DNA of 61,482 nt, counting the filler, from Choristocarpus tenellus KU-1152 (Eukaryota; Protista; Phaeophyceae): NCBI GenBank assembly GCA_964200185.2. It is 12 parts of 12 records of this genome, joined end to end, with 100 filler letters (N's around TTAATTAATTAA, not from the genome) between each part and the next. Parts side by side here need not be neighbours in the genome. Positions count along the whole stretch, not along the records: positions 41,859 to 56,602 come from CAXNAD020001122.1; 11 more parts are not named here. One strand, given 5' to 3'. Below, piece after piece: positions 13,801 to 56,702 of this stretch. Position numbers and translations under genes: made by a program. Every line of letters starts with the position of its first letter. Position 1 is the first letter of the stretch. The notes beneath the pieces are model-generated. The model searched no databases. It was not told where the DNA came from and saw only the letters and a list, made by a program, of their open reading frames with translations.

Positions 13801-14330
13801 AGTACTTCATGGATATCGGGCATACTGTTGAGATCAAAGAGATCACAGTCTCTCACAAAAACGTGGCCTTGACCAACAACCATGTGTGATAATGCCATCT
13901 GGGCTTCTCCTCTTTTTCTTTTCTTCTTTTTCTCTTTGGAAGGGAAGAGGAGTGGATGAATCCTTTGCCCAACTTCTTGGTGTTGATGATAGTAGGTCTA
14001 GGGGGCGTAAGGATTTGACATACATAATCTGAAAAAATATGGATTTGTGCCCCTTGAACCAATTGTGATCTTTATTGGTGGATCATCCTTCAATAGTGCT
14101 TTCTTTCTGCATCTTATTTTCTATTTCTATTTACTTCACTGATAGAACTGTCCTTTTGCTTTGCTCACGAATTCTGGATTATTATTATTATTTGCACATT
14201 CCTATTTTCTTATTCCTCTATCCTCCATNNNNNNNNNNNNNNNNNNNNNNNNNNNNNNNNNNNNNNNNNNNNTTAATTAATTAANNNNNNNNNNNNNNNN
14301 NNNNNNNNNNNNNNNNNNNNNNNNNNNNAG

Positions 14331-41752: not shown

Positions 41753-41898
41753 TTTCTGNNNNNNNNNNNNNNNNNNNNNNNNNNNNNNNNNNNNNNNNNN
41801 NNTTAATTAATTAANNNNNNNNNNNNNNNNNNNNNNNNNNNNNNNNNNNNNNNNNNNNCCCCCAGATACTTTGGGTCCAAAGAGCAACAGGGCCATAC

Positions 41899-44800
41899 CT
41901 GCTAGCTTTGTACAGCTTCTTCAGATGATCCATTCTGATGAACCCATCCTTGGTGACGTCTAGGGCATCAAATGCTGCCCGAACAATTGAACTCCTTCGT
42001 TCACCCATAGGGCCCTGGAGTCCCTTAAGGAACTCACGCGAACTAATCGCTCCATCTCCATTCCTATCAAAGAACTTGAAGACCTGCAGAGAGGAGAGAG
42101 GTGGGGCACATATGGGATCACATACTTGGAAACCCTTTGTCAGACGAAAAAGATTGTGCTATCAAAGACACAAGGTTGTTTCTATTGAGGGTATGTCCAC
42201 CAGGTTGTGCATTGCAACATTTGGATATGAGGTTTGAGATTATGAAAACTCAACTGAGACTATGACACTGAGCTGAAATAATGCACTTTGATCAATGATT
42301 TCAGTGACGTGACGAAGACTTTTTCTCAGAAGGATAGCCACCATCCCAACACCAGATTGAACTCATCAATCCTAAACAGAGCTCTTACTTGTATTCAGTG
42401 TCAAGAGACCGTGATTTATGCTTGCATCAACTAGTGCACAGACACATATGAGGGATTTGACCTTGCTTACGCTCAAGCAACAGAGCTCACTCTTGTTGCC
42501 TAAAACACACCATTACTATGGTACAAATAAATATAACACTATAGCTCTACTGTGGACAACTTGAGAGTACATAGACTCTTAAGCATTTCTTCCTCCACTT
42601 AAAAACCGTTACTTGCCTTTTTCATTTCATCATCCGATACATGGACACCAAACTCCCTCAACCCCTGCTGGAGCTTACAGGAATCTAGCCGCCCAGCCCC
42701 AGACTCATCCATCATTCGCAACACGCGCCGCACACCCCCTAGCCCAAACTTGCCAGCACTTGTGATCTGTTGGAGGGGGCATGGTGGTCTGGGTTGGGGC
42801 CACTGTATCATAACATTGCAACGAAGGACTGGGGAGGTCGATCAGAGAATGGATTTTTTATAGTGCGTGAGAGTTCATTGCCCAATCAGAGCATTGCTAA
42901 GAGGGGTGACAACTGCTCCCCCCCCCTAGGTCTGCAATAGCAATATATATATAAATGGAATATCAAATAAAGAGTTGAATGCAATAGGGAAGGCTATAGA
43001 TATGAATACAATACAATAGACGTATGTGTACGCGCACTACTTGATTTAAAAAAATTATACATAAGTACACACACACAAATATGTTACCAGTGCTTCAAAT
43101 GTAAGGAACGTATCTATTTCCTACGTTTTTGAGATCTACAAGGTTATAGGACCGCATGGTCGTAATCCAAAATAGACTATGTGTGAATGTCACACAATAC
43201 AACCCATTGCAGTTTAACTTGATATTTGACATAATCCCACTAATAGCCTGACATGGTGCTATCCTCCAAGTAGAAACATTATTTTGTCTCCAATTACCAT
43301 ATATTTCAACCCTTGTCCTCTGCATTCCTTTCAATAAAAAACACTTCTCTTCTAGCATGATATGCCACATCTACATCATATGCCCACTCCCACTTTTCTC
43401 CTCTGCGGAAACTCAACACCAGCAACCTAATGGCCTCATCCATACCCTAACCCTGCTACTGTCTCACCGCCATCCTCAGCCGCTCAACCTCAATGGGAGT
43501 TCCAGGTAGCACCCTAGTCTGTGAGCCGTGAAAGGACTCTGGCACACCACTGTTAGCATTGATGACTGCATCGGTTTTAAAACGCACTGGACGGATGGCA
43601 TCTGTCTCTGTAGTCCTATTGCCCGCACAGAGAGAGCAAGGATCGGTGAATTATGCAGATAGGAAGGAAATTGTGTAGATATGTACACAAAGAAGAGGCT
43701 GCGGTGACTTACAGGAGTTCTCTACGTAGGAAGGGATGGGTGGGAGGTGGGAATGAGATATGCTTGAGGGGGATGCGTTCGCAAGACCCATAAGTGAGAA
43801 ATCAGCACTAGTCTCAATACTAGCACGGGAACTGGTTGTTTCAAAGTTTAGTCAAGCAATAACTCAAGGCACTTAAAGTTTAAATTTTGCTAATGCTTAC
43901 CATTGTTGTCGATACTTATGCAGAGAGGCGTTGTCTGTCATACCCCCAGTTAGCTTAAATGTAGATACAAATTCGTTCACCTTTGGTTAGAGTAGAGCAG
44001 AGGTGTTTCAAGGAGAAGTGCTTAGCCCATCAGCATGGGAGGGGTGCAGCAGAATATAATTCGAGTTGAAGCTCCAAAGACACGCTAATATTTCGCAACT
44101 AGTGCAAATAGATGGCACCGTAGTACAACATTCCATAGCGGTACAGGATCAAATACGGTTACTGACTTCAAAATTACTGCATGTTCTAGAGCACTCATGC
44201 CACCAGGCCAAAAGGTATTCGGAGTATCCTTATGTTAGGTAATGTTTTCCATTCTATCTTGTCGTTTTTCAAGTATGTTTTATTATCGTCCCACCTTGAT
44301 ACCTTCACTTCCTGGTGAGGACCCAAAGCTGCTGTTGGTGAGGGTCGACCACAACTTGTCGCTCTGAGATTTGTCATAGTTCAATACTCTGTGTCCATCA
44401 ATACGGGAATCTTCTTCCAGTGGCAGCGCAGCACCAAATCTTCACACAATATTAGCACCATGCCATGGCCATGGTAATCGTGGAAGGAAAAGGACAAATA
44501 TGTCAAACATAGAAGAAGGGTTTGATCTCACAAAATGGCAAAAAAGGAAATGCTTTTCTGACATGTGCACCTAATAGTGTTCAACGAGAATGCAGCCTGT
44601 GGAAATGGCTCATCGAACTATTTATCAATAAAACCATTGACTCAACTGTGGATATTGACCGTGCTGTCCTACCATTGACTATGGATAGGCTCTGTAGTTG
44701 GGTCTGAGGCCTCAGGGAGAGTCTTGGAATATTGCACACATCTATTGATGCCCCAACTAATAGAACGGGAACTGAATGGACACTCAGAACTGAACCATCC

Positions 44801-46547
44801 GCTATCGCAACTGAGTTGGAATTAGACAGCCTAGGAAATTTGTGACTTGTGTGGTCGCAAAACATGTACAAATACACTTGTCGAAAAGTGCAGCAGAATG
44901 AACATATTCGATGGCCTGAGGTGCATAGTCAATTTGTAAGGACTCCTTATGTATATGTTACGAACTAAGTGCCACAGGGGAAAGAAAATTAAGGAGAACA
45001 TCTACGACAGATCAATTTGGTCGTTGGTTTTGTTCAGCAATTAATGCTCTTAGGGCTTAACATATTTTAAAGAGATAGTGAGTGCACCCCCCGGTACTTC
45101 GCACGTTTGTGACATCATATTGAAACTGTACTCAGGGGTACATCAAAAAAAGAATTTAACATCTTCCCAGCATCCACAATAGTAGACCCTCTCTGGGTCG
45201 AATAGAGCTCTACGTCTTTTACACATAATGCCCGAACTTGGTGGTACAGGAGGTTGAATTACCTTTGAGGTCGTTGAAGAATACCCTCGTACATCCCTGA
45301 ATGTGCAACTGTCTGGTAAAGTGCATGAGGAAAGCCCTGAGGTTGAGCCAGGCCCGGCTCTGCTATCGCTTCAACCCAATTCCCGCACTAATCAAGAACG
45401 TGGAGCCCCGAGATGGGGACGTAAGAAGGGGATTATAAGTTCGACGGAAATTTTTTTGATAAGATTTTTGACACTTTGATATTTACTGGAGCATCAGATA
45501 TACTTTCACGGGGAAATCAGGGTTTGAGTGGGCTATGCTATCATTAGAATTGACGGATGCTCTGACATAACTAAACTCGCCTTTGTTTTCGTCCCGTATG
45601 TTTTCTTTCCCCCCCTTAAAGAGTTTGTGCCTCCTTCATTTCGGAGACGTTGCAGGAACGCCATTCTGCTCGGCCTGTATGCTGAAACAAACTCTTAGTC
45701 CAACACAAAGCTGTTGCAGCAAGAACTCCCGTTCTTACCCCTTTGATATTAGCGATCTGCCGCAATAACTCGTCTAACGGGAGATCACAATCATGCACGT
45801 AGGACGACGTGGTGAATCTCACCTTGTGCTAACCATTTGATGGAGAGGAGTCCTTTGGTCAGAGAGCGCTGCACTGCTGAAATTACTCATTTCCTCAAGG
45901 AATGATTCGTTTGAAAGTTGAACAAGAGGACGGTTTCAAAGAAAGGTGCTGTGAAACCGACAATTTGACGGTAGGGATATCTATCGTGCTCCTGGGTATG
46001 GCAGGCGAGAACTTATCGCAGAAGTTCACGAGGTCAAATCTAGACACGGAACACTTATGTTTCAAAGAAGATAGCTGCCAGAGCTTAGTGCTCCTGCTGC
46101 TCATCTCTAAGGTACCAGGATCGCTACTCGATCTCATAGATTTAAATAATCTCATTTTGTAGTATCACCTCCTGTGGTCCACAGAGATAGTGTGACTATG
46201 TCTCTACCTGATACTAGTCTCAATATTGTTTTTCTTTCTGTCCCTTATCTTCTTGTTCCCTAGCTGACGGTGGATGGCGCTGCATCGGCGGTGATATTCT
46301 CATGTTGTCGCCTCTATAATTTTGAGCAATTCTTGTGCGCGATCGCCTTGCCTTAATTTTATTACTTCTCCATGTACAGCAATATCCCTGCCTTCCCGCC
46401 TGAACGCATCCTATCATGCTCCACTGCCTCTTGACCTCTGATTGCGACCTCTCTTCCTCTCTCGACCCAAGACGTTAATTTTCCGAGGAATGCTCTGACT
46501 CCTTTTGGTTTGATGTGATGCAAGGTACCTATTCTTACATGAGGCAT
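41899..46547 (-). CDS. Calcyphosin-like EF-hand protein, 3' end beyond contig break; exons 46547-46366 (tentative), ~45871-45823, 45674-45581, 45336-45263, 44439-44295, 43980-43901, 43615-43468, 42766-42617, 42083-41899
   Basis: Exon phases chain consistently from 45823 downwards. The product has GLGGVRRVLRMMDESGAGRLD, FKFFDRNGDGAISSREFLKGLQGPMGERRSSIVRAAFDALDVTKDGFI, the calcyphosin EF-hand arrangement. The first exon is uncertain. Confidence 0.82.
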
Positions 46548-46807
46548 TAATGGACTGAGCGCTATTCGCTACCTCCAACTATATCTTGATTGTTTATGAA
46601 GGTCCATGCCTCATGAGACAATCACGAGCCGAGTAAGCTTTGTTGGATTCAATCTTATCTAGATTGAACGCGAAGGTCCATCCCCGACGTTTGGGTCCAA
46701 AATGGGACTCTTCCTCTTCCCAATAATTATCCCCCTGGAAAACGTCCGTGACGCTTAGGATCCTTGCATCCTATTTATTCTCAATCTGGCAGGAATCTTA
46801 AGGGATC

Positions 46808-49380
46808 ATGGGGGAAGAGGTGCCTGATTGGACCATGATGTGGGGAGCAAAAGTCAAGATGCCCATAGATATGAACGATGATATGCTGCGGGACGCGATC
46901 AATACTTGCAGGGATGTGTTGGAAAAGTGCAATGACTTCGAGGCTGAAGGTGGTCTTACAATTGGCTGTAAACATGCAATCTGCTGCTTCGTGTATAGTA
47001 GGCAAGATACTACTTTGATCGGAGCCAGGATTAAAGATCAACAACCTGTTTTCGTATTTAAAGGACTATGATCAAGGACACACTTACAGTACATCGCTAG
47101 TTACGGACTTGTAAATATAGGTATGTAACTAGACTATGCTGATTGTGTAGCATTCGGACAATGTCGCTATGAGAACGAATCTCTCTTGGTTATCTCAAAG
47201 CTCATCATTTTTTAGTTATCTTGGAGAAAATATTGAGCCAAAGTATCTTAGAGGGTACGGCTGCGTCCATTTGGGGGTCAAAATCCAATGTTGCGATTTG
47301 ATGTAATTTTGGCTATGATATTTACTAGGAAGTGTCAATATCCTTGTTCCGGACACACCTTTTCATAAAGTACACATTTTCCTATTCCAAACCTTTTTGG
47401 AGTAGGAAAATGTCATAAAAAAACACATGGCAAGCCAAGCCCCAAATGGACAAACAGGGCAAAACTCGTACCCTCTAAGATACTTTCACTCATTGCTTCA
47501 TCGATCTTTCATACAGTCCTTGCACCCCAATTTGTTTGAGAATACCATCAGGTGGAACCAATTCTCGTCGAAAGAAAATTATATCTAAATGTCACCACTG
47601 CTCTAAGCCTTACCGTGGTACGGAGTCTAGTCATATGTACACTTGGAGATTAATCTCAAGCTGGATATCTTTTATAAATATTTCCTATAAAGCATCAACC
47701 ATCACTGGATGTTGTGGACATTATCTCTTCTCATTTTCTACACTCAGATAATGTCTTTTTTTTCCAATCTGGGTCAGGTGGAAGAGACAGAAAGTCAACA
47801 GAGATCAGTAAGAATGTGTGAGGTTTTTCTTGATCCCATTCACCATTTCCGTCTGTAGGTTTTGCTCCTGACTTGCGACAGCTTGTACGACAGTGTATTG
47901 GAGAAATATATGTGTTTACAGTGTCTTCTCTATTCGAGAGTATACTTAGCAGCTACAGTGTCTTGACTGCCATGCGGGGTGTTGATCCACTTCCGTACAC
48001 CTCCAATCCAAATACCTGTACTACAATCTGATGTGAAGTTGCCTAAATTCTTGTTTCTCACTTGGATCCAGGGCTTGCAGCAGCTGAGACAATCAAGAAG
48101 CACTTCGATTCTAAGTGGGACCCGAACTGGCATGTCATTATTGGACGAAACTTTGGGTCCTTTGTTACACACGAGACAACGTGAGCTTGAAAAAAGTTTT
48201 TATATTGTCAACTTGACAGGGAAGGAGGTTGGATGGAGTTGAGTGAGGGAGTATATGTAGAAACAGTGTTGTACCTCAGCAACCTTTCCAGCAGTGACCA
48301 GAACTGCAAAGTTATGGATGCTGCCATTATGCAGTAGGACAAAATGATTTCAAGTAGTATCCTGTAGATATATGCTGTTCTCTAAGAAAATGTGTTGGCC
48401 TGGTACATTAAATTCAATCCATTGCTTGGTCTTCCACGATAAAGACCATGGAATGTGTCCCTTAGGTTTCCCTCAGGTATTACATTTTTTTAGATATTTC
48501 CACAGAGAATAGTACACTATAAGTCTCACTCAACAGAATGAATCTTTGGTGGTCAAATCATTCTTGATTCCCTTTTCTGAGTAGTCCTTTGACAAAAAGA
48601 GTAGAACTGTGACAAAAGCTGCTTGTAGAATATCTTCTGTCAAATACTTCGAGGTAAGAGTCAAGTTTTGAAGGAAGAGCTGTGTGGGGTTATATGTATC
48701 CGCAAATACGTCCACACTATCATGAAGAGTTGGAAATGTCAGCGTGTTTGCCGACAACCACCAGAAAAAATTGGAAAAGAACTATACATCCACCATAAAG
48801 ATACAACCGTTGACAATGAGTTTTACTTATGACTGTAGAAGATCCTCACAAAATATTCTCACCAACTAATTTTTGTCTAACCACTCTACCATCCCACCAG
48901 CCAAACTAACACTTTGCCACAACATTCTTCACAGTTCTAATCAAGTCAGATAGGGTCCTCAGTCTAGAATTGAAGCTTGAATGCCCTCACTGTGTGCCAA
49001 GAGAGGGGGTCATCCTCCATCTCTTGCAATAGTCTGAATGGCATCGGCATTACTGATTTTCCATTCCTCAGTGAAACTGGGCATGACTGCGAACTCTAGG
49101 ACTTGAGCAGATAATCAATTACCTTTCTGAACTTCAACAGCCATTTTCCTACTTTCATTGAGTACCCACATCAATCAATCTCCGGAAGCATGACTGATGG
49201 AGGCTACACTGCACCCATTCGTCTTCTGTGCCATCCCTCTGTACTTGCCCAAGCCCTGTTCAGCATCATTGAACTTTGAGGTCTGATCGGCTTTGCGTCT
49301 TTCTTCCCCACTTCTCACTCAGGTGTTTTGTATATTTTTATCTTGGGGATAAGGCCATCATGATGTACAAGGCCGGGTAA
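46808..49380 (+). CDS. Dynein light chain type 1 (LC8 family); exons 46808-46949, 48072-48180, 49323-49380
   Basis: Spliced product ...[14 protein letters not shown]...[53 protein letters not shown]-stop has the WH.IxGRNFGS.VTHE signature. Intron phases 1 and 2 match. Confidence 0.95.
47235..47491 (+). mobile_element. MITE family A in intron 1 of the dynein light chain gene
   Basis: Full TIRs. Flanks TATT and ATTG, so only ATT is duplicated. Confidence 0.93.
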
Positions 49381-50374
49381 ACTCTTTGGAGGGTGACGAT
49401 TGTACTGCGCAGACACTGTAACCACAGCCAGTCTAGTGCTGCAAGGACTCTACACTCAATGCGCTTGTGGTATATACTTGGTAATATTAGCTTGACTAGT
49501 TAATCAAGAGTTAGCTTAGGTTGTCTCAGATCAGCCAAGTTCGAAAAAGCAAGAAGAATACCAATGCCAACGACATGTGTACAAAAACTTTGAAAAGTGT
49601 CTCACAGTCCGGCATACCTACAGCTCCAAAGTAGCAAAGTGCACACTCAACTGAAACACAAATCACAAATCTCTGCCGACTACAACACAGACTCCAATTA
49701 TTGCAAAAGATGTCTAGACTCAACTCAAAAGCAAAATCGAATTAATTGCAAATGACAGTTAGACTCAGCTCAAGTATCAGTTTCGTAATGGTGTTCAATA
49801 GGCTGGGGTACTAATCATTTCAGCTTCAGCTTCTCCAACTCCTCACTCAGGTATACAGGGGAAACACTTCAGACTAGAAAAGTCAGAGGTTCCTACATCC
49901 TCTCACACTCCTTGAATATATAAATACATTGTACCCAAACGGTTGAAGTGCCACATTTGCATGGACTTCCCCATTCTAGACTCTCTGGCGGAGGAGAAGG
50001 TGTGCACGCACTAGAATGAATGATACCTTTACATGGATGATATCGTGAGGCAAGACAAGTCTGAGGCTCCGCAGAAAACCAGAACTAGGATCAAGAATTC
50101 AAAGCAATGGGCAGCACCTATTTACAAGTAGAAAATCCTATGAAGCAACAGCAACTACAGAACCTGAGGGTCACACGAACACCAGCACCAATACCAGCAA
50201 CAGAATGGAAGCTTGATTAGGTTATGGAGTCGAGGTCAAGAAAGAAGAAACAATGCTGATACTTACATCACATTTAAGAAAACCTCGATCTGTGGGTCTG
50301 CAATTGTACAAAATACCCTCTCGGAGGATTAATAAGTATATGCCCAGCAAAACTAGAAATGAGCACCTTAGCCC

Positions 50375-50643
50375 TGTGCAAAGTAGGACAATAGTGAGGG
50401 GTACCTTATTTTGTGTATGAGAGATGTAACTAATAAGATAGAACATCTGGATTATGAATGGGAATATGTATGTGTTTTTATTATTATTTGTGTCTCATAC
50501 ATAAGTCCATGGTTATGTCAACGTAGTTGAATGCAGAATAAGACTCATACATATTCCCATTCAGAATCCGGATGTACTATCTCATTAGTTACATCTCTCA
50601 TACACAAAATAAGGTACACCTAGCTATTGTCCTACTTTGCACA
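50375..50643. mobile_element. Fold-back mini-element composed of two inverted 5' (U3) ends of the copia family 3 LTR
   Basis: 98-bp arms 50375-50472 and 50546-50643 both align to the LTR start at 58070. The termini are TG...CA and the flanks AGCCC / AGTCC. Confidence 0.88.
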
Positions 50644-53600
50644 AGTCCCGATATATAGACGGGTTCTTTAACTTAATGAGGTCACAAATCACAAGCTATC
50701 ACAAAGGTAGAGGTCAATGCAAAACCAGGCATGGTAAATAAGTGGGTGAAACTCTCCGATGTTGTGGAAGCAATAGTATGGAGAGAAGGAGTGAAGAAGG
50801 ATCAAGCTGAAGGGTTGGTATCATGGTATTAAATCAGATATCAGTGGTGAGCTCTAAAATGAGATTAACATCGTTTTTTATGGTAGGTGTGTTTCAAGGC
50901 GATTGGTTAGATTCATAGGTTTACAGGGCCGAATGTTTGGTTTAAGCAGGTTGAAACGTGGGGTGGATGCTGTGATCAAGAGAAGATTAATGGCGATGCC
51001 AAAATTACAAGTTGTGGTAGTCATCTTTGCGTTTATTGCTGACGTAGGTTCGTTGATGAACTCTACGATCTTCTGCGCTTATAGCATGCATTAGGTGGTG
51101 AATGATACTCTAGAGATCCGATGCAACACACATGAGTCATTAGTGCTCCTAATATGTAAGTGGAAGATCTCCGTCTGCAGCTTAGTTTTTAATAAGGAAA
51201 GGCGAGGATGCAAGTGTTTAGCAACATACTCGTTCTGGGAGCACCAAAATCGCTATCAACACTGAGAAAGCTGTGGGTTGATCAAGACTAGTAGAAGTAA
51301 AATTGACGAAAGGGTGGATACAAGAGTGAATGGAAATCCACAGGTATATCCCAAATCGCTTCTCGCAGGCCATTGAACCTCATTGGTTAGACGCAGAGTC
51401 ATTATTATGCGATGTGTCAAAGCAATAAACGGATCACAAGTGTTAATAGAGTTTAAACAACGGTGGTGAGGATGTAAGAGGAGTGAAGCTCTCCATTAGA
51501 GCAATGGCATATTTCTCATTCAGATTGCTTGGGCACCAAGTGACACGTCTTTTTCAAAGATCGCAGAGGAAATAATTGGATACTTGATTCAAGAGACTGT
51601 ACAGCATCCCAATCCTTTGCAACAGTATCTGTTGAAATATTCTAATTTATATACAGCTACCTCCATGGATACGTTTTTGATAGCTAGAGTCCAAGCCTCG
51701 CTGAATCGCCTCGAGCTGGTGGTGGACTATGTTAATCGTCACAGATGCACACGACGCACAGGAAAGCTCTTGCTGATGGTACAGTGTCAATATTGGATTG
51801 TGAATTCGGGGTGGTGATCATTCTTGGTGCAACCATACAGAAAAGGACTTACATTGCTTGGCAGAAGACTCTGCTGCCCTGTCGAAAATAGCCTTAATAT
51901 TATTTTGATGTTTTTGTCCTGTCTGATACGTCGATGATGTTTTGTCCATGTGCCTGTTAGTGCTCTACTACTAGAAATACTTCGTGTTCTAGACTCCATC
52001 TATCCGATAGATCAAGCAGAAAGGGAGTTTTAGTTAGAGCATGCATGTATGACATATTATGTTACAGTTAGCAGTACATAAAATGTGTCAAGGGCTTGTC
52101 ATAGCATTATGGAAATGAAGAGTACAACCATTTAGCGAGTATTAGAAAGGATGTCTGTCCAACCTATGCAAGAGCATAAACGACTGTGTGAACATAGGTA
52201 CTTTCAAGCAATGATCTATCCCATAGTTTAGTTCAGGGCTTGCTTGTTGTGCCTCCCAAATTCTTCTTCCAGAGTCAACCTTGGTCTTAACCGTCATGAA
52301 TATCGAAAACCCTATATTGTGAACCTGGGTACCTCTCCCCTCCGTCCATCACTTCACTATCCTCTCTGATCTCGACATTGCTACGACATAGAATACAATA
52401 TTTTTTTTTGTGATCATTTGAAAGTACCAAGTATTCAACTGCATCATGCCCTCGTAAGGCTTTCGTAAATACGAAGAATATGTAGTTGCAAATTGTGCTT
52501 GCAGAACAAGATGTGAGTGAGTGACGATGATGTGTAATTGGGTGCTCCGGACACGTCTTCAGTTTTATGACATGCCCAGGGAGAGAGAACGTTGAATTAA
52601 ACTCATTTTATTAGTATAAAAACTAATCATACACGATGCCTATTTCTTGGTATCCACCCGTCTTCATGAAATGGCTCACTTCTTGCTAGTGGCTATTGTA
52701 GGAGGGAGTTACGTCTCAAAATCTACTGAGAAACGATGTTTACGTAGCTACAAAATGTTCCAACACTGGCAAGCCAGAAATGGAGCTTGCAGCACCCCGA
52801 AGGGAGGATGATGCCTGAACACCAGTTAGTCGTACACAGTCCCTTACTGAGCTACCCGGAGTAGGTACTATGAAGTAAGGTACGTTGGTTGAAATGTTTA
52901 GCGAATGACATCAATTAGAAAATGAAGAGAAATATTTTAGCAGGAAATCGTCAGGTGTACGCCACAACCGTTTGCCTCTCAGAAGGGCTCTGTACTCATA
53001 TCATAATGTCACATTTCTGACTTTGAAGTAAAACAGCGATGCAAACTGTTCGCTATAGTGCTGTAAGGAAGACCGCCATAAACCTAGAGATGCCTGTCCT
53101 GACTCCCCACCCCAACAGTGAGTCAATATTCACTCTTCTCATATGAGGAACTAATGCATATGACATAAATGCAATGTATTACTTGGGAAGAAATCCATTG
53201 CTTTTGTTGTACCATCTGAATGGTTAGTCTAGTTAGGACCATTGAAAGGCCTTCCCCCCTCTATGAATAGTCTTGCCTGAGTCGCTACTGGTCCCACTTT
53301 GTAACTGGTTGCATCTTTTCCAAGTGTTGGTTTTGGAGCTATTTTCACACACACAATATTAATCAGATATATGGTACCTTTCTTATATTATTTATTTATT
53401 ATTTATTTATTATTTATTTATTTCAGTTTCAGTCTCACTCAATTATCGTAGTAGGTTGATGATGCATGAACACAAAATAAAGCAAATACAGATGTGGGAG
53501 GAAGTTGTGACCAGTCGACATTGCAGCACACGAACAACAGCAGAAAGTAGGTATATTGTGACCTCAACCTACGAACGTATAGCACGTAGTACCTATTACG

Positions 53601-53690
53601 ACCAAAATACTACTCCATTATTACTTCTAGGTCAGCAATGTCCACTCGGAGTGAGCCCATTAAGTAATTGAGAATCAAATCAACTGAGAT

Positions 53691-54130
53691 GTAGGCAAGG
53701 CTGCATTTTAAGGATTCTGAGAAAGGGCTAAAGTGTTCCATTTTGTATAATGAATGGTAGAAAGAGACTTTCTTGAATTGTGTGTCACTTTGTAAGTGGG
53801 AAGGGGTGAAAAAAGCAATTTTGCGTGCACTATTGTGCACATAAAACAATGACATAGACTGTATTGCACAGGGTAAGAAAGATGACCAAGAATGCAAAAG
53901 GGTTCAAATCTACCTACCTCACATTTTTTTTGGCTCTTGAGAAGTAGGCAAGGTTGCATTTGAAGGATTTTGAAAAATGCCAACAGACATGCCTCTTTGT
54001 ACATGAATCACTCTGGAAAGGCCTTTTCTTCACTGAATTGTGGTGAGAAGGAGAATATCAATTTTGCGGACACTGTTGTGTACAAAAGCAATGGAACAGA
54101 GTGTATTACACAGTACGAGAAAGATGGGTA
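53691..54130 (+). repeat. Diverged tandem duplication, period about 253 bp
   Basis: GTAGGCAAGG(C/T)TGCATTT(T/G)AAGGATT occurs at 53691 and 53944. CAATTTTGCG..CACT.TTGTG and TGTATT.CACAG...GAAAGATG also recur. Confidence 0.75.
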
Positions 54131-54327
54131 ATAATTTGAAAAGGTCAATAGTTTCCTACCTCTCCATTACTTTTTCTGGAGTACTACTTGGAAGGCGTGC
54201 AGGCTTGCTTGTCGGTTTCATTACAATCCTGTACAACCCATATTATGTTGCATCATCGACTTTACGATGCCCTGGCAAGCAAAATAAATGCATACCCAAC
54301 CTTCATCGAAAAAAGCACCGAATTACC

Positions 54328-55983
54328 ATGAGTGGAGCACATACATCCGACTCACTCAAGGTACAAACTCGGACAACAGATAAAGATATCCAGGAGGAAT
54401 CTGCAGCAATAGGAGGGAGTGAAATGTCTACGCAAAAGTGTTGCTCTTGGATGGTCAATCAACAGGTCATTACTTATACCTTCCCTATGCCCATTTCCCC
54501 CCAGGTCAAGAGAGTCGGGGGCCCTAAGACTGAAAAAGTCCCTAGGGGCACCCGAACATGTGTCCCAGAACACCGGCAGGTAAAAATAAAGGCCAAACCT
54601 GGAGGAGCCTTTGGTCTGTCCTTCGGTGGGAGAGCAGTGACCAGAATTGCCCCAGGGAGCCAGGCCGAGCGATACGGGGTCATGCCTGGCTGGACGCTTG
54701 CTGAAGTCGACGGCCGGGCTACATCAACGGCAATAGAGATAGCATCAGCCTTGGCCAAAGCCCGTACTGGTGCCAAGCCCTACAATCTATTGTTCCTTGT
54801 AAATGTCGATATTCCACAAACAAGCGGTTCTGGCACAGGGAGTGCATATCGTGAGAATGACGATGGACTTGCCGTAGAAGGGGAAGGAGAAGGAAACAGA
54901 ACAGGTGTCCCTCCTGACGTTCTGAAACCTTCCTCGGGCGAGACATTACCTACGTGTGGCGTAGCATGTGCTGCAGACACCGAAAAAGACACAGGGTCTG
55001 TGGATGAGGGGATGACCTCAACCGTGGAGAGTCAGGATGGAGGTGAAATATCCGCCATGGAGGAGCCTAGGGAGACAACATCCAGTGCCAATGGGACAGG
55101 AGAGGTTACTCTCAAGTACGAAATGTACGATGAGAAGTTTCCGATTGAGGTGTGTCCAATAGTGAGCCAGCTGGAGATCTGGTATAGATGAAAAATGCTT
55201 CACTGAAGTAGATGCAACTACATACATGCCATCGAAAACCGCATTCTTCTGGTGTATATCTATGTGTGACACATCTAACACACCCATAAACAGCCTCACT
55301 CCCCTTCCCTATCAACGAACACCTCTGTTCCACCTATGACTCAATTTCATCTCCTATCATCTCTTATCATCTATTGCCACCTATTTTATCGATCCCCACG
55401 TCTCTTCCCCTTGACCCTCTATCCCTTTATTTCAAGGATGGCTCCATCACTGCTGCTGCAATAGACGACATATATTGCCTGAGCTTTGCAATGCCTAACT
55501 GCACGCTGCATCTAGGATACCTGAGTCCCTCTGATCACTATGCTTCAGAAGCTGAAGGAGTGGGTATGCACTACCTACATGGTACGCATTCCATTCATGC
55601 AATAGCTGCTGTGACGGTGAACAACTGAAATGAATCTCACAAAACTTCCGATGTAGTCCATTCTGGGATTGGAGTGGATTGGATGTGGGGGTAGTTCAAG
55701 GGATTGATTTGTTTTGATACACAGAAAACCAATCTTACACGATTTATTTCAAGGCTGCAGCATTGACCTAAGCCCTATCCTCCAGCCCTCAACCTCGACC
55801 CCCTTCTCACCATTGAATCCTAATGCAAAACCTTACCGGTGGAGAGTGTCTCATCCCCGACTGTTGTTTCGTGCAGAGGACCCAGCAGGGACATTCTGCG
55901 GTTTGGAAGGGGGTGGCACATATTGGGTGTACGTGTCCCAGGATGCAGAAGAAGAGGCCAAAGATCGTGAGAGAATGAAACAG
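54328..55983 (+). CDS. Uncharacterised protein with a PDZ-like domain, 3' end missing; exons 54328-54360, 54505-55149, 55437-55581, 55877-55983
   Basis: GGAFGLSFGGRAVTRIAPGSQAERYGVMPGWTLAEVDG fits the PDZ carboxylate loop and GSxA..xG...G..L..VDG pattern. Downstream exons join in phase (VTLKYEMYDEKFPIE|DGSI...IDDIYCLSFAMP...|EDPAGTFCGL). Confidence 0.78.
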
Positions 55984-56290
55984 GTGAACCTACCACCCAT
56001 ACCTTGGGCAGTTTATGATTGTGAATTGATTATGCACTCGCCAATCCCCAGCTGTATGAACGAGAATGAAGTAGGACAAGAAGAAAATTATAGACATGGA
56101 GGACCAATTGTCACTTTCCACCGGCCATTAGTGTTGAACTGAGCTTCTCTCCAACTTGACTATATCTCCCAGCCGGATACAGCTATTGCATACCGTATTT
56201 CCCTTTCATCAAGATGTGGAAAGTAGGAAAAAGTTCAATTTAGTAACGTGCATACAGAGAATTTCTACAAGTCCTCCAGTGTAGACTGGC

Positions 56291-56331
<41 letters not shown>

Positions 56332-56702
56332 ATTCACCCTGCTGTGCAGACTTGGCACCCCACTTCTTCATTCAACCTTAAGCAGTCCAATTTCCAATCC
56401 CTACTGGAAATAGTACGAAGGAGCATGCACTGCAGCATAGAAACGTCAAATGCATTCAAGCCTGTTGATATTTTCGTTGGATTAGCAAAGGGCTCATTGA
56501 TAGTCAAGTAGCACAACTTTGTGGGACAGTGAGAAATAGTGGATTTCCTGAGTTGCTACACACAAGTAAACATCTGAACAGAGGGTCAAAGTATCTGGGG
56601 GGNNNNNNNNNNNNNNNNNNNNNNNNNNNNNNNNNNNNNNNNNNNNTTAATTAATTAANNNNNNNNNNNNNNNNNNNNNNNNNNNNNNNNNNNNNNNNNN
56701 NN

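Follow-up and report, generated by a model that had tools for sequence, protein, structure and literature searches.

A 269-bp palindrome (positions 50375-50643) carries the same terminus of one highly repeated family at both of its ends and is embedded in single-copy DNA of Choristocarpus tenellus KU-1152. It was found in the window, that is, the whole stretch of 61,482 nucleotides analysed here. With a probability of about one half, a single integrase-type event inserted a short DNA that had this repeat terminus at both ends.

Structure of the palindrome

An inverted-repeat search revealed two arms of 104 nt with 91% complementarity, separated by a loop of 61 nt (Table 1). Nine positions were mismatched over the full length of the arms. 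A blastn alignment of the arms covered 98 nt with 92.9% identity and 7 mismatches. The stability of the structure was compared with that of shuffled sequences. The DNA fold of the palindrome was calculated at -99.2 kcal/mol vs. -23.8 kcal/mol for the shuffles (z -24), and 0 of 200 shuffles was as good. The corresponding RNA fold reached -157.8 (z -21). The 269-bp palindrome with 98-bp arms and seven mismatches which had been described in a first-pass annotation of this DNA was thus reproduced. Its outer ends, TGTGCA...TGCACA, and the flanking pentamers AGCCC and AGTCC were also read in the sequence as described there.

Table 1. Features of the palindrome and its borders (positions in the window).
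Feature	Position	Strand	Remark
Left flanking pentamer AGCCC, candidate target-site duplication copy	50370..50374		4/5 match to right pentamer
Left arm, first ~98-104 nt of the repeat family, starts TGTGCA	50375..50478	+	unambiguous homology stops at 50472
Left-arm site of ~27 further nt in most family copies	50425..50426		contig loose ends
Junction TGTTTTTATT, micro inverted repeat of the parent	50473..50482		readable both as left-arm continuation and, in reverse complement, as the far end of the right-hand copy
Loop, next ~60 nt of the right-hand family copy, ends in A/T-rich tract	50479..50539	-	unbroken contigs across
Right arm, same family terminus, ends TGCACA on the plus strand	50540..50643	-	X1 contig joins right arm to unique right flank
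Right-arm mirror site of the extra ~27 nt in most family copies	50592..50593		contig loose ends
Right flanking pentamer AGTCC, candidate target-site duplication copy	50644..50648		4/5 match to left pentamer

Within the piece of the window that holds the palindrome, the terminal 20-mer was found at the two ends of the element only, in inverted orientation, when three mismatches were allowed. Direct repeats inside the element did not exceed 17 nt, and no terminal pair was among them. No tandem array was found in the element, and no ORF lying wholly inside it was longer than 39 aa. A primer binding site (PBS) and a polypurine tract (PPT) are absent, both ends are of one kind, and the element is non-coding. 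Therefore, it is most likely immobile and single-copy. In the surrounding piece no ORF for a reverse transcriptase, integrase or transposase was found, and a Pfam search with 25 ORFs gave nothing above threshold. An ORF of 383 aa at 54040-55191 showed one distant match to a PDZ domain only, and exact-protein look-ups for two ORFs of the window returned nothing on record.

Both arms are the terminus of an abundant repeat

Copies of the family were examined using contigs from three public sequencing runs (X1, X2 and X3). The number of contigs drawn by the element was 689 in X1 and 505 in X2, and the summed depth reached tens of thousands. With a word depth of ~21-23 in X1, the flanks were single-copy as far as the termini. 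At position 50375 a match began in 21 contigs of X1 and 22 contigs of X2, and the sequences preceding this position were unlike each other (agreement 0.41). Consequently, 50375 is a true family terminus. The arm homology stopped exactly at this terminus on both sides and the flanks are not part of the palindrome. The two arms had been claimed to be the same end of one repeat, and this was borne out, with the terminus of a highly repeated family located exactly at the outer ends of the palindrome. X1 contigs ran from each unique flank ~50 nt into each arm. Of 1,426 flank bases, 5 differed between X1 and the window, so that X1 may represent another individual or haplotype.

Within the piece only the two arms were found as copies of the family, using a repeat search, the 20-mer search with three mismatches and short-word blastn. 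Exact-pattern scans of metagenome contigs gave 0 matches, and a protein word search with the ORF reading out of the arm yielded no candidate. The family probably represents an LTR retrotransposon by its LTR; the copia identity given to it in the first-pass annotation was not supported by any further copy in the piece. The consensus of the upstream loose ends terminated in GATAT, identical in X1 and X2 and absent at the palindrome locus. This pentamer could reflect a target preference or the end of a polypurine tract.

On the left arm 17 contigs had their loose ends behind 50425, with an agreement of 0.79, and 7 contigs before 50423, with an agreement of 0.92. On the right arm loose ends were observed behind 50595 (16 contigs in X1 and 10 in X2, agreement 0.8), and these were the reverse complement of those at 50425. 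The extra letters of these contigs agreed well, and we interpret them as the same ~27 nt which most family copies carry and both arms are without. A segment missing from both arms had been postulated, and the divergence of the contigs at 50423/50425 and 50595 confirms it indirectly. X1 contigs also ended at 50425 and 50592, and a single-copy 'opposite strands' joint was observed at 50417/50602; several readings fit these observations. The X1 contig ends give a hint that the form with the ~27-nt deletion may be present elsewhere, too.

Contigs on the right arm continued unbroken through the loop to 50476-50478 and then diverged with well-agreeing loose ends. They were unbroken over 50476-50644, and the summed depth across the loop amounted to thousands to tens of thousands. 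Family copies thus run on past the loop, which shows that the right-hand copy continues into it. This agrees with the antisense continuation proposed in the first-pass annotation. Family contigs in minus orientation began to match at 50475-50478. The junction of the two orientations lies in a short sequence which can be read both ways, and a micro inverted repeat at this point, likewise claimed before, is thereby supported. The two readings presumably overlap over the ten positions given in Table 1. The family majority letters at 50542 and 50545 make the extension of the left arm resemble the forward sequence. Among the matches listed no contig crossed the junction at 50472/50473, the contigs listed diverging at 50475-50478. 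No contig among them spanned the centre of the palindrome (50426-50591) either, so that the spacing of 269 bp is taken from the assembly alone.

Origin of the palindrome

The two flanking pentamers match at 4/5 positions. An empirical probability of 0.019 for a match of at least 4/5 was determined at 14,024 control positions of the same piece. When other lengths and one mismatch were allowed, the chance probability of a flank duplication was 0.049. At lengths from 2 to 11 other than five no flank duplication was found, which means that an 8-9-bp match is absent. No contig skipping the element, that is, no empty site, was found in X1, nor in X2 and X3, which are both too thinly covered to be informative. 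The palindrome ends at the family terminus and not in the flanks, which argues for its formation outside the chromosome and subsequent insertion. Its failure to reach into the flanks also argues against an inverted duplication in place and for an end-specific joining.

According to the explanation that we favour, the palindrome would be the relic of a single aberrant integration, in which a short piece of double-stranded DNA with the 5' (U3-side) terminus of the abundant repeat at both ends entered single-copy DNA. The inserting enzyme would have been an integrase joining CA-3' ends, and its 5-bp stagger would have left AG(C/T)CC on each side. In the inserted DNA, ~98 nt of the terminus would have been followed by ~171 nt of it in the opposite orientation, with the joint located within a micro inverted repeat of 8-10 nt that stems from the parent. 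In vitro, a coordinated insertion of two ends can be carried out by integrases, whether these ends are identical or come from separate donor molecules, and the two-end integration catalyzed by retroviral integrase likewise uses CA-3' ends, identical or separate, and a characteristic stagger (PMC2857682, PMC11054761). Those reactions took place in the test tube with model substrates, whereas the palindrome would be a natural, germ-line-fixed product of a retrotransposon host, with its inner ends joined by the cell.

Two routes to such a molecule may be considered. In the somewhat preferred one, two separate truncated cDNA fragments would each have provided one end for the integrase complex, and the cell would have joined the inner ends by microhomology. 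In the other, to which we give somewhat less weight, the micro inverted repeat would have allowed a nascent cDNA strand to fold back and serve as its own template. Two linked sites, 50396/50622 and 50400/50618, distinguish the arms, and both states occur in other copies of the family. At these sites the contigs on each arm carried the state of that arm (for the right arm 31 contigs in X1 and 17 in X2). Therefore, both states are inherited family variants. Arms with different linked family variants argue against a simple fold-back of one strand, and the fold-back of a single strand claimed in the first-pass annotation was accordingly not supported. Judged from these variants, two source molecules appear to fit better than one. 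The divergence of the arms to 91-93% identity, including one CpG-to-TpG change, would have arisen after insertion. The observed/expected ratio of CpG was 0.52. In a eukaryote such a value indicates a signature of CpG deamination, for which DNA methylation would be the simplest cause.

Foldback (FB) elements possess long arms of tandem subrepeats and an 8-9-bp duplication, and the palindrome has neither a tandem array nor an 8-9-bp flank match. Solo LTRs and TRIMs derive from LTR retrotransposons; they are small and non-coding, have TG...CA ends, are usually flanked by a 5-bp duplication and often lie in or near genes (PMC4717578). The palindrome resembles them in its small size, its lack of coding sequence, its TG...CA ends and its candidate 5-bp duplication. 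However, the two ends of a solo LTR differ, one being of the U3 and the other of the U5 type, whereas TG and CA of the palindrome belong to two inverted copies of one terminus. A TRIM is built from direct terminal repeats, a PBS and a PPT, whereas the terminal repeats of the palindrome are inverted.

Alternatively, the palindrome might be an ordinary MITE, an internally deleted non-autonomous copy whose parent would be a DNA transposon of the cut-and-paste type, bounded by long terminal inverted repeats (TIRs) and encoding a Ginger2/Tdd-like, integrase-related transposase. We consider this unlikely, although the architecture is of the MITE type: a small, non-coding element of 269 bp with inverted arms of ~100 bp (104 nt by the inverted-repeat search), an A/T-rich centre and a short candidate duplication in the flanks. 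Transposons with TG...CA-ended TIRs, 4-6-bp duplications and small non-autonomous derivatives exist (PMC2836005, PMC6839031). Ginger2/Tdd elements and GingerRoot MITEs resemble the palindrome in their long TIRs, their TG...CA ends and their small non-autonomous copies, e.g. the 252-bp Ginger2-1N1_NV, and have duplications of 4-6 bp, with which its candidate 5-bp duplication would agree (PMC2836005, PMC6839031). The TIRs of Ginger2/Tdd-like elements measure 45-297 bp and their duplications 4-5 bp. Moreover, GATAT at the upstream loose ends of the family in X1 and X2 recalls a preference for A/T-rich palindromic targets, and the probable nature of the LTR assignment leaves room for it. However, Ginger2/Tdd termini read TGTNR and their target is the A/T-rich RTATAY (PMC2836005). 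The palindrome ends in TGTGC, and its target AGYCC is not A/T-rich. Most family contigs also extend, in one direction, 200 nt or more beyond the turn of the palindrome. The family is very abundant, far more so than the Ginger-type families, which are low-copy in the cited surveys, and no ORF for a transposase was found in the piece. Finally, the right-arm variant had a summed depth of ~3,500 at 50623 vs. ~95,000 for the left bin 50313-50413, which is an indirect comparison. Such unequal depth is not as expected from fixed differences between a left and a right TIR.

Next in order, and improbable as well, is an origin from two LTRs of the same subfamily which inserted independently, close together and in opposite orientation, the 5' end of each pointing outward, with a microhomology deletion at a later time. 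This deletion would have removed everything between ~98 of one LTR and ~171 of the other, host DNA included, and the likeness of the pentamers would be a coincidence. In genomes rich in repeats, elements often insert into or next to one another, and illegitimate deletions are frequent. The different family variants at the linked arm sites are accounted for by two insertions, and two inverted copies of the micro inverted repeat of the LTR give the same 10-mer as direct repeats, an ideal substrate for microhomology deletion. On the other hand, three events are required, the ~27-nt deletion variant has to be present in both insertions, and the 4/5 match of the pentamers has to arise by chance (P 0.019). 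No other remnant of either element or of DNA between them was found, and the flanks are single-copy up to the termini.

It is quite improbable that the palindrome represents one member of a multi-copy family of LTR-end fold-backs which the integrase of the parent or a related enzyme can re-insert as DNA and which also feeds hairpin small RNAs directed against the parent LTR, with the right-arm variant (at least 31 other contigs) as the signature of its right arms. If true, this would define a retro-derived, MITE-like class with two U3 ends. The propagating MITE-like class proposed in the first-pass annotation found no support: no contig with the same junction was present among the matches listed, PBS and PPT are absent, and there is no obvious route to self-copying.

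The repair of breaks via hairpins is known to produce palindromes. Nevertheless, a rearrangement in place (fold-back repair or template switching on a single truncated LTR) or the collapse of a larger inverted pair by the assembler, with which the lack of a contig over 50426-50591 among those listed would agree, is the least probable origin, since a fold-back in place would copy into the flank whereas the arm homology ends exactly at the family terminus on both sides, X1 contigs independently link each unique flank to an outward-facing terminus, and the 10-nt overlap is too short for an assembler collapse.

Hairpin RNA and biological meaning

If transcribed, the element would give an imperfect double-stranded RNA of ~100 bp that matches the terminus of the parent. 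Of the listed sequencing runs containing the locus none was an RNA run, and the siRNA formation suggested in the first-pass annotation was thus not supported. LTR hairpins have been discussed as candidate triggers of silencing (PMC11624286). Maize Mu killer and the LTR hairpins sought for Arabidopsis EVD are likewise based on the inverted duplication of a transposon terminus and offer a potential for double-stranded RNA against an active family. However, hairpins of this type are of kilobase scale and derive from rearrangement or nested insertion, whereas the palindrome is 269 bp long, ends exactly at the element termini and may be flanked by a duplication. Matches to plant miRNA precursor families in Rfam stayed below the gathering threshold (MIR807 with 64.1 bits vs. 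113, MIR2646 with 41.1 bits vs. 245) and were stem-to-stem alignments only. Further Rfam matches of this kind were also sub-threshold and aligned one long stem with another. A wheat primer that matched the terminal 13-mer in a text search differs outside those 13 bases and was taken as a chance hit.

As a single, decayed and apparently immobile copy, the palindrome is a curiosity rather than a new class. A wider importance would follow only from more copies with the same junction or from small RNAs of this locus. If the proposed integration is true, the palindrome would document, in nature and in vivo, that an integrase has paired two ends of the same (U3) type, a reaction so far known mainly from integration assays in the test tube. 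It would also represent a simple route by which a genome may gain a compact hairpin against the promoter region of an active retrotransposon.

Anatomy of the palindrome and its surroundings

The palindrome, referred to as the element, was confirmed and lies far beyond chance expectation. Alignment with blastn returned arms of 98 nt with 7 mismatches, exactly as proposed in the first-pass annotation; over 104 nt the number of mismatched positions is 9. The arms are separated by a spacer of 61 nt, the outer ends read TGTGCA (left) and TGCACA (right), and the flanking pentamers are AGCCC and AGTCC, respectively. Folding of the element as single-stranded DNA yielded −99.2 kcal/mol compared to −23.8 for shuffled sequences (z −24), and folding as RNA yielded −157.8 (z −21). 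The terminal 20-mer was found nowhere else in the searched piece (41859-56602), which also contained no further fragments of the element. Within the right-hand copy a 17-nt imperfect direct repeat (50494-50510/50544-50560, 82%) was observed. Thus, the parent repeat carries an internal, ~50-nt-spaced CTCATACATA-type duplication.

Coordinates of the element and of neighbouring features
Feature	Position	Strand	Description
Palindrome	50375-50643		269 bp
Left arm	50375-50478		104 nt, 91% complementary to right arm
Junction readable both ways	50473-50482		TGTTTTTATT, ten bases
Right arm	50540-50643		104 nt
Second MITE-like inverted repeat	47234-47492		26-nt arms, 92% complementary, 207 nt apart
Simple repeat	53379-53423		TTAT/TATTATTTATT-type array
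383-aa open frame	54040-55191	+	locally G+C-richer (0.46-0.50); 3.4 kb from element
Simple repeat	56294-56328		(TC)17 microsatellite

The CpG observed/expected ratio of the piece (0.52) and its TG/CA excess (1.22-1.25) fit a methylated eukaryotic genome. A Pfam search of 25 ORFs of the piece found nothing. The 383-aa frame, itself free of a Pfam match, contains a PDZ-like segment and has one distant database relative with PDZ Pfam domains (30% identity, E 2.8e-16); this frame probably forms an exon-rich section of a genuine gene. Another complementary pair, GTCCATTTGGGG/CCCCAAATGGAC, lies inside the second inverted repeat, which shows no obvious flanking duplication.

An abundant parent repeat family

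Because the putative parent LTR of the first-pass annotation is located beyond the searched piece, contigs of three public sequencing runs were aligned on 49000-52000, and all family letters cited are those printed in this alignment. X1 and X2 derive from one organism and X3 from a close relative, organism B. The flanks of the element are single-copy with a word depth of about 21-23 in X1, whereas the element itself was matched by 689 contigs in X1 and 505 in X2 with a summed depth of tens of thousands, which is not a copy number. This shows a very abundant dispersed family, also present in X3. No family copies from elsewhere were obtained from any collection searched. Just right of the element (50717-51120) the X1 word depth was slightly raised (29-41 vs 21-23 in other flank parts), which suggests a low-copy repeat. 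X3 coverage was thin around the element; contigs of this run were identical to the window over 49568-49801 (234 nt) and 50776-50926 (151 nt), making organism B a very close relative.

The match started exactly at 50375 in 21 X1 and 22 X2 contigs, and their preceding sequences were unlike each other (agreement 0.41). Consequently, 50375 is a true family terminus. The last five letters of this noisy upstream consensus are GATAT in both runs and could represent the end of a polypurine tract at 3' LTR junctions or, alternatively, a preferred target; GATAT is absent at the left end of the element and occurs 6 nt past its right end (50650-50654). Contigs on the right arm passed unbroken through the loop to 50476-50478 and then diverged into a well-agreeing continuation (agreement 0.63-0.98). 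Thus, the right-hand copy continues through the loop for another ~60 nt, and family members normally extend at least 200 nt one way. Many contigs diverged at 50423/50425 and at the mirror point 50595, with extra letters that agreed well and were mutual reverse complements. We read them as ~27 nt, with GAT on each side, present in most copies and absent from both arms. All of this agrees with the earlier description of arms derived from a putative copia LTR, with its terminus at both ends, its antisense continuation in the loop and a shared gap of ~25 bp.

The left arm follows the forward family sequence unambiguously up to 50472, and the right-hand copy, reversed, begins at 50473. According to the family majority letters at 50542 and 50545 the forward sequence there is G/T-rich followed by TTATT, and ~60 nt further along the family an AATAA-rich sequence ends in AAAAACA. 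From the element and these contig letters we infer that the parent holds an imperfect micro inverted repeat of 8-10 nt at both junction points, where one had indeed been annotated.

Probable insertion and possible origin of the two arms

On either side, the arm homology ends precisely where the family terminus lies, without entering the flanks. A chromosomal fold-back or template switch would have copied into the flank, so an end-specific enzyme most likely produced the ends. The TG...CA ends and the match of the pentamers at four of five positions favour one insertion with a 5-bp stagger without proving it. The pentamers remain a candidate for the annotated integrase-type target site duplication. 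Their match is imperfect, and at least four of five positions matched at 1.9% of 14,024 control positions of the same piece, while 4.9% were duplication-like (lengths 3 to 11, one mismatch allowed from length 5). In vitro, integrases catalyze coordinated insertion of two identical ends or of two separate donor molecules (PMC2857682, PMC11054761). The best explanation (probability about 0.5) is therefore that a short DNA, bearing one and the same terminus at each end, was inserted in one integrase-type step.

That the element is an ordinary MITE, derived from a DNA transposon related to integrases, appears unlikely. Elements of the Ginger2/Tdd and GingerRoot type end in TG...CA, carry TIRs of 45-297 bp, make 4-6-bp duplications and include small derivatives (PMC2836005, PMC6839031), which resembles the ends, inverted arms, short flanking match and small size observed here, and the parent is only putatively an LTR. 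However, Ginger2/Tdd termini read TGTNR and not TGTGC, and the target at this locus is not A/T-rich. In addition, the family has a very high abundance, its other copies go on one way beyond the turn of the element, and depth differs strongly between the two arm variants.

Within their first 98 nt the arms differ at seven positions. Three of these differences are confined to one arm (50442 left; 50623 and 50564 right), one (50448/50570) is a CpG-to-TpG change, and for the remaining three both states are seen in other contigs of the family. The right-arm states at 50622 and 50618 are common to contigs on the right arm (31 in X1, 17 in X2), which among the three clustered sites (50618, 50622, 50623) deviate from it only at 50623; left-arm contigs carry the left-arm states. 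Two linked changes thus copy an existing family variant, which is not expected from random decay of a perfect fold-back. They agree with two source molecules that belonged to one subfamily bearing the deletion, or with later gene conversion. The differing arms would also be explained if two copies had inserted in inverted orientation and a deletion at microhomologies had then fused them, but this improbable course takes three steps, and it requires that both insertions were of the variant lacking the ~27 nt and that the pentamers match by chance. Rearrangement in place, or collapse during assembly, is very improbable. Although no contig among those listed spans 50426-50591, in X1 both unique flanks are connected by contigs to a terminus that faces outward; with 5 of 1,426 flank bases differing from the window, X1 may come from another individual or haplotype.

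Under the single-insertion explanation, two truncated cDNA fragments may have contributed one end each, and microhomology may have served to join the inner ends. Because of the linked variants we lean slightly towards this route; the single-strand fold-back proposed originally is plausible, although a simpler fit probably exists. The anatomy given in the first-pass annotation holds, and the structure is both real and out of the ordinary. Its best reading is one old, aberrant product of an integrase, built from two U3-side ends belonging to an abundant repeat.

Propagation and hairpin potential

The propagating MITE-like class suggested in the first-pass annotation is unsupported: among the contigs listed none has the same junction, and all diverge at the turn. 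The element possesses no PBS, no PPT and no second kind of end; therefore, if it derives from an LTR, no way in which it could be copied is evident. A plant miRNA precursor was rejected, as Rfam matches to plant miRNA hairpin families were far below threshold and stem-to-stem only. Among the sequencing runs on record that contain the locus, none is an RNA run. The predicted hairpin-forming potential of the element is real. Hairpins formed by LTRs have been looked for as triggers of silencing (PMC11624286), and this is the main reason why the locus could matter.
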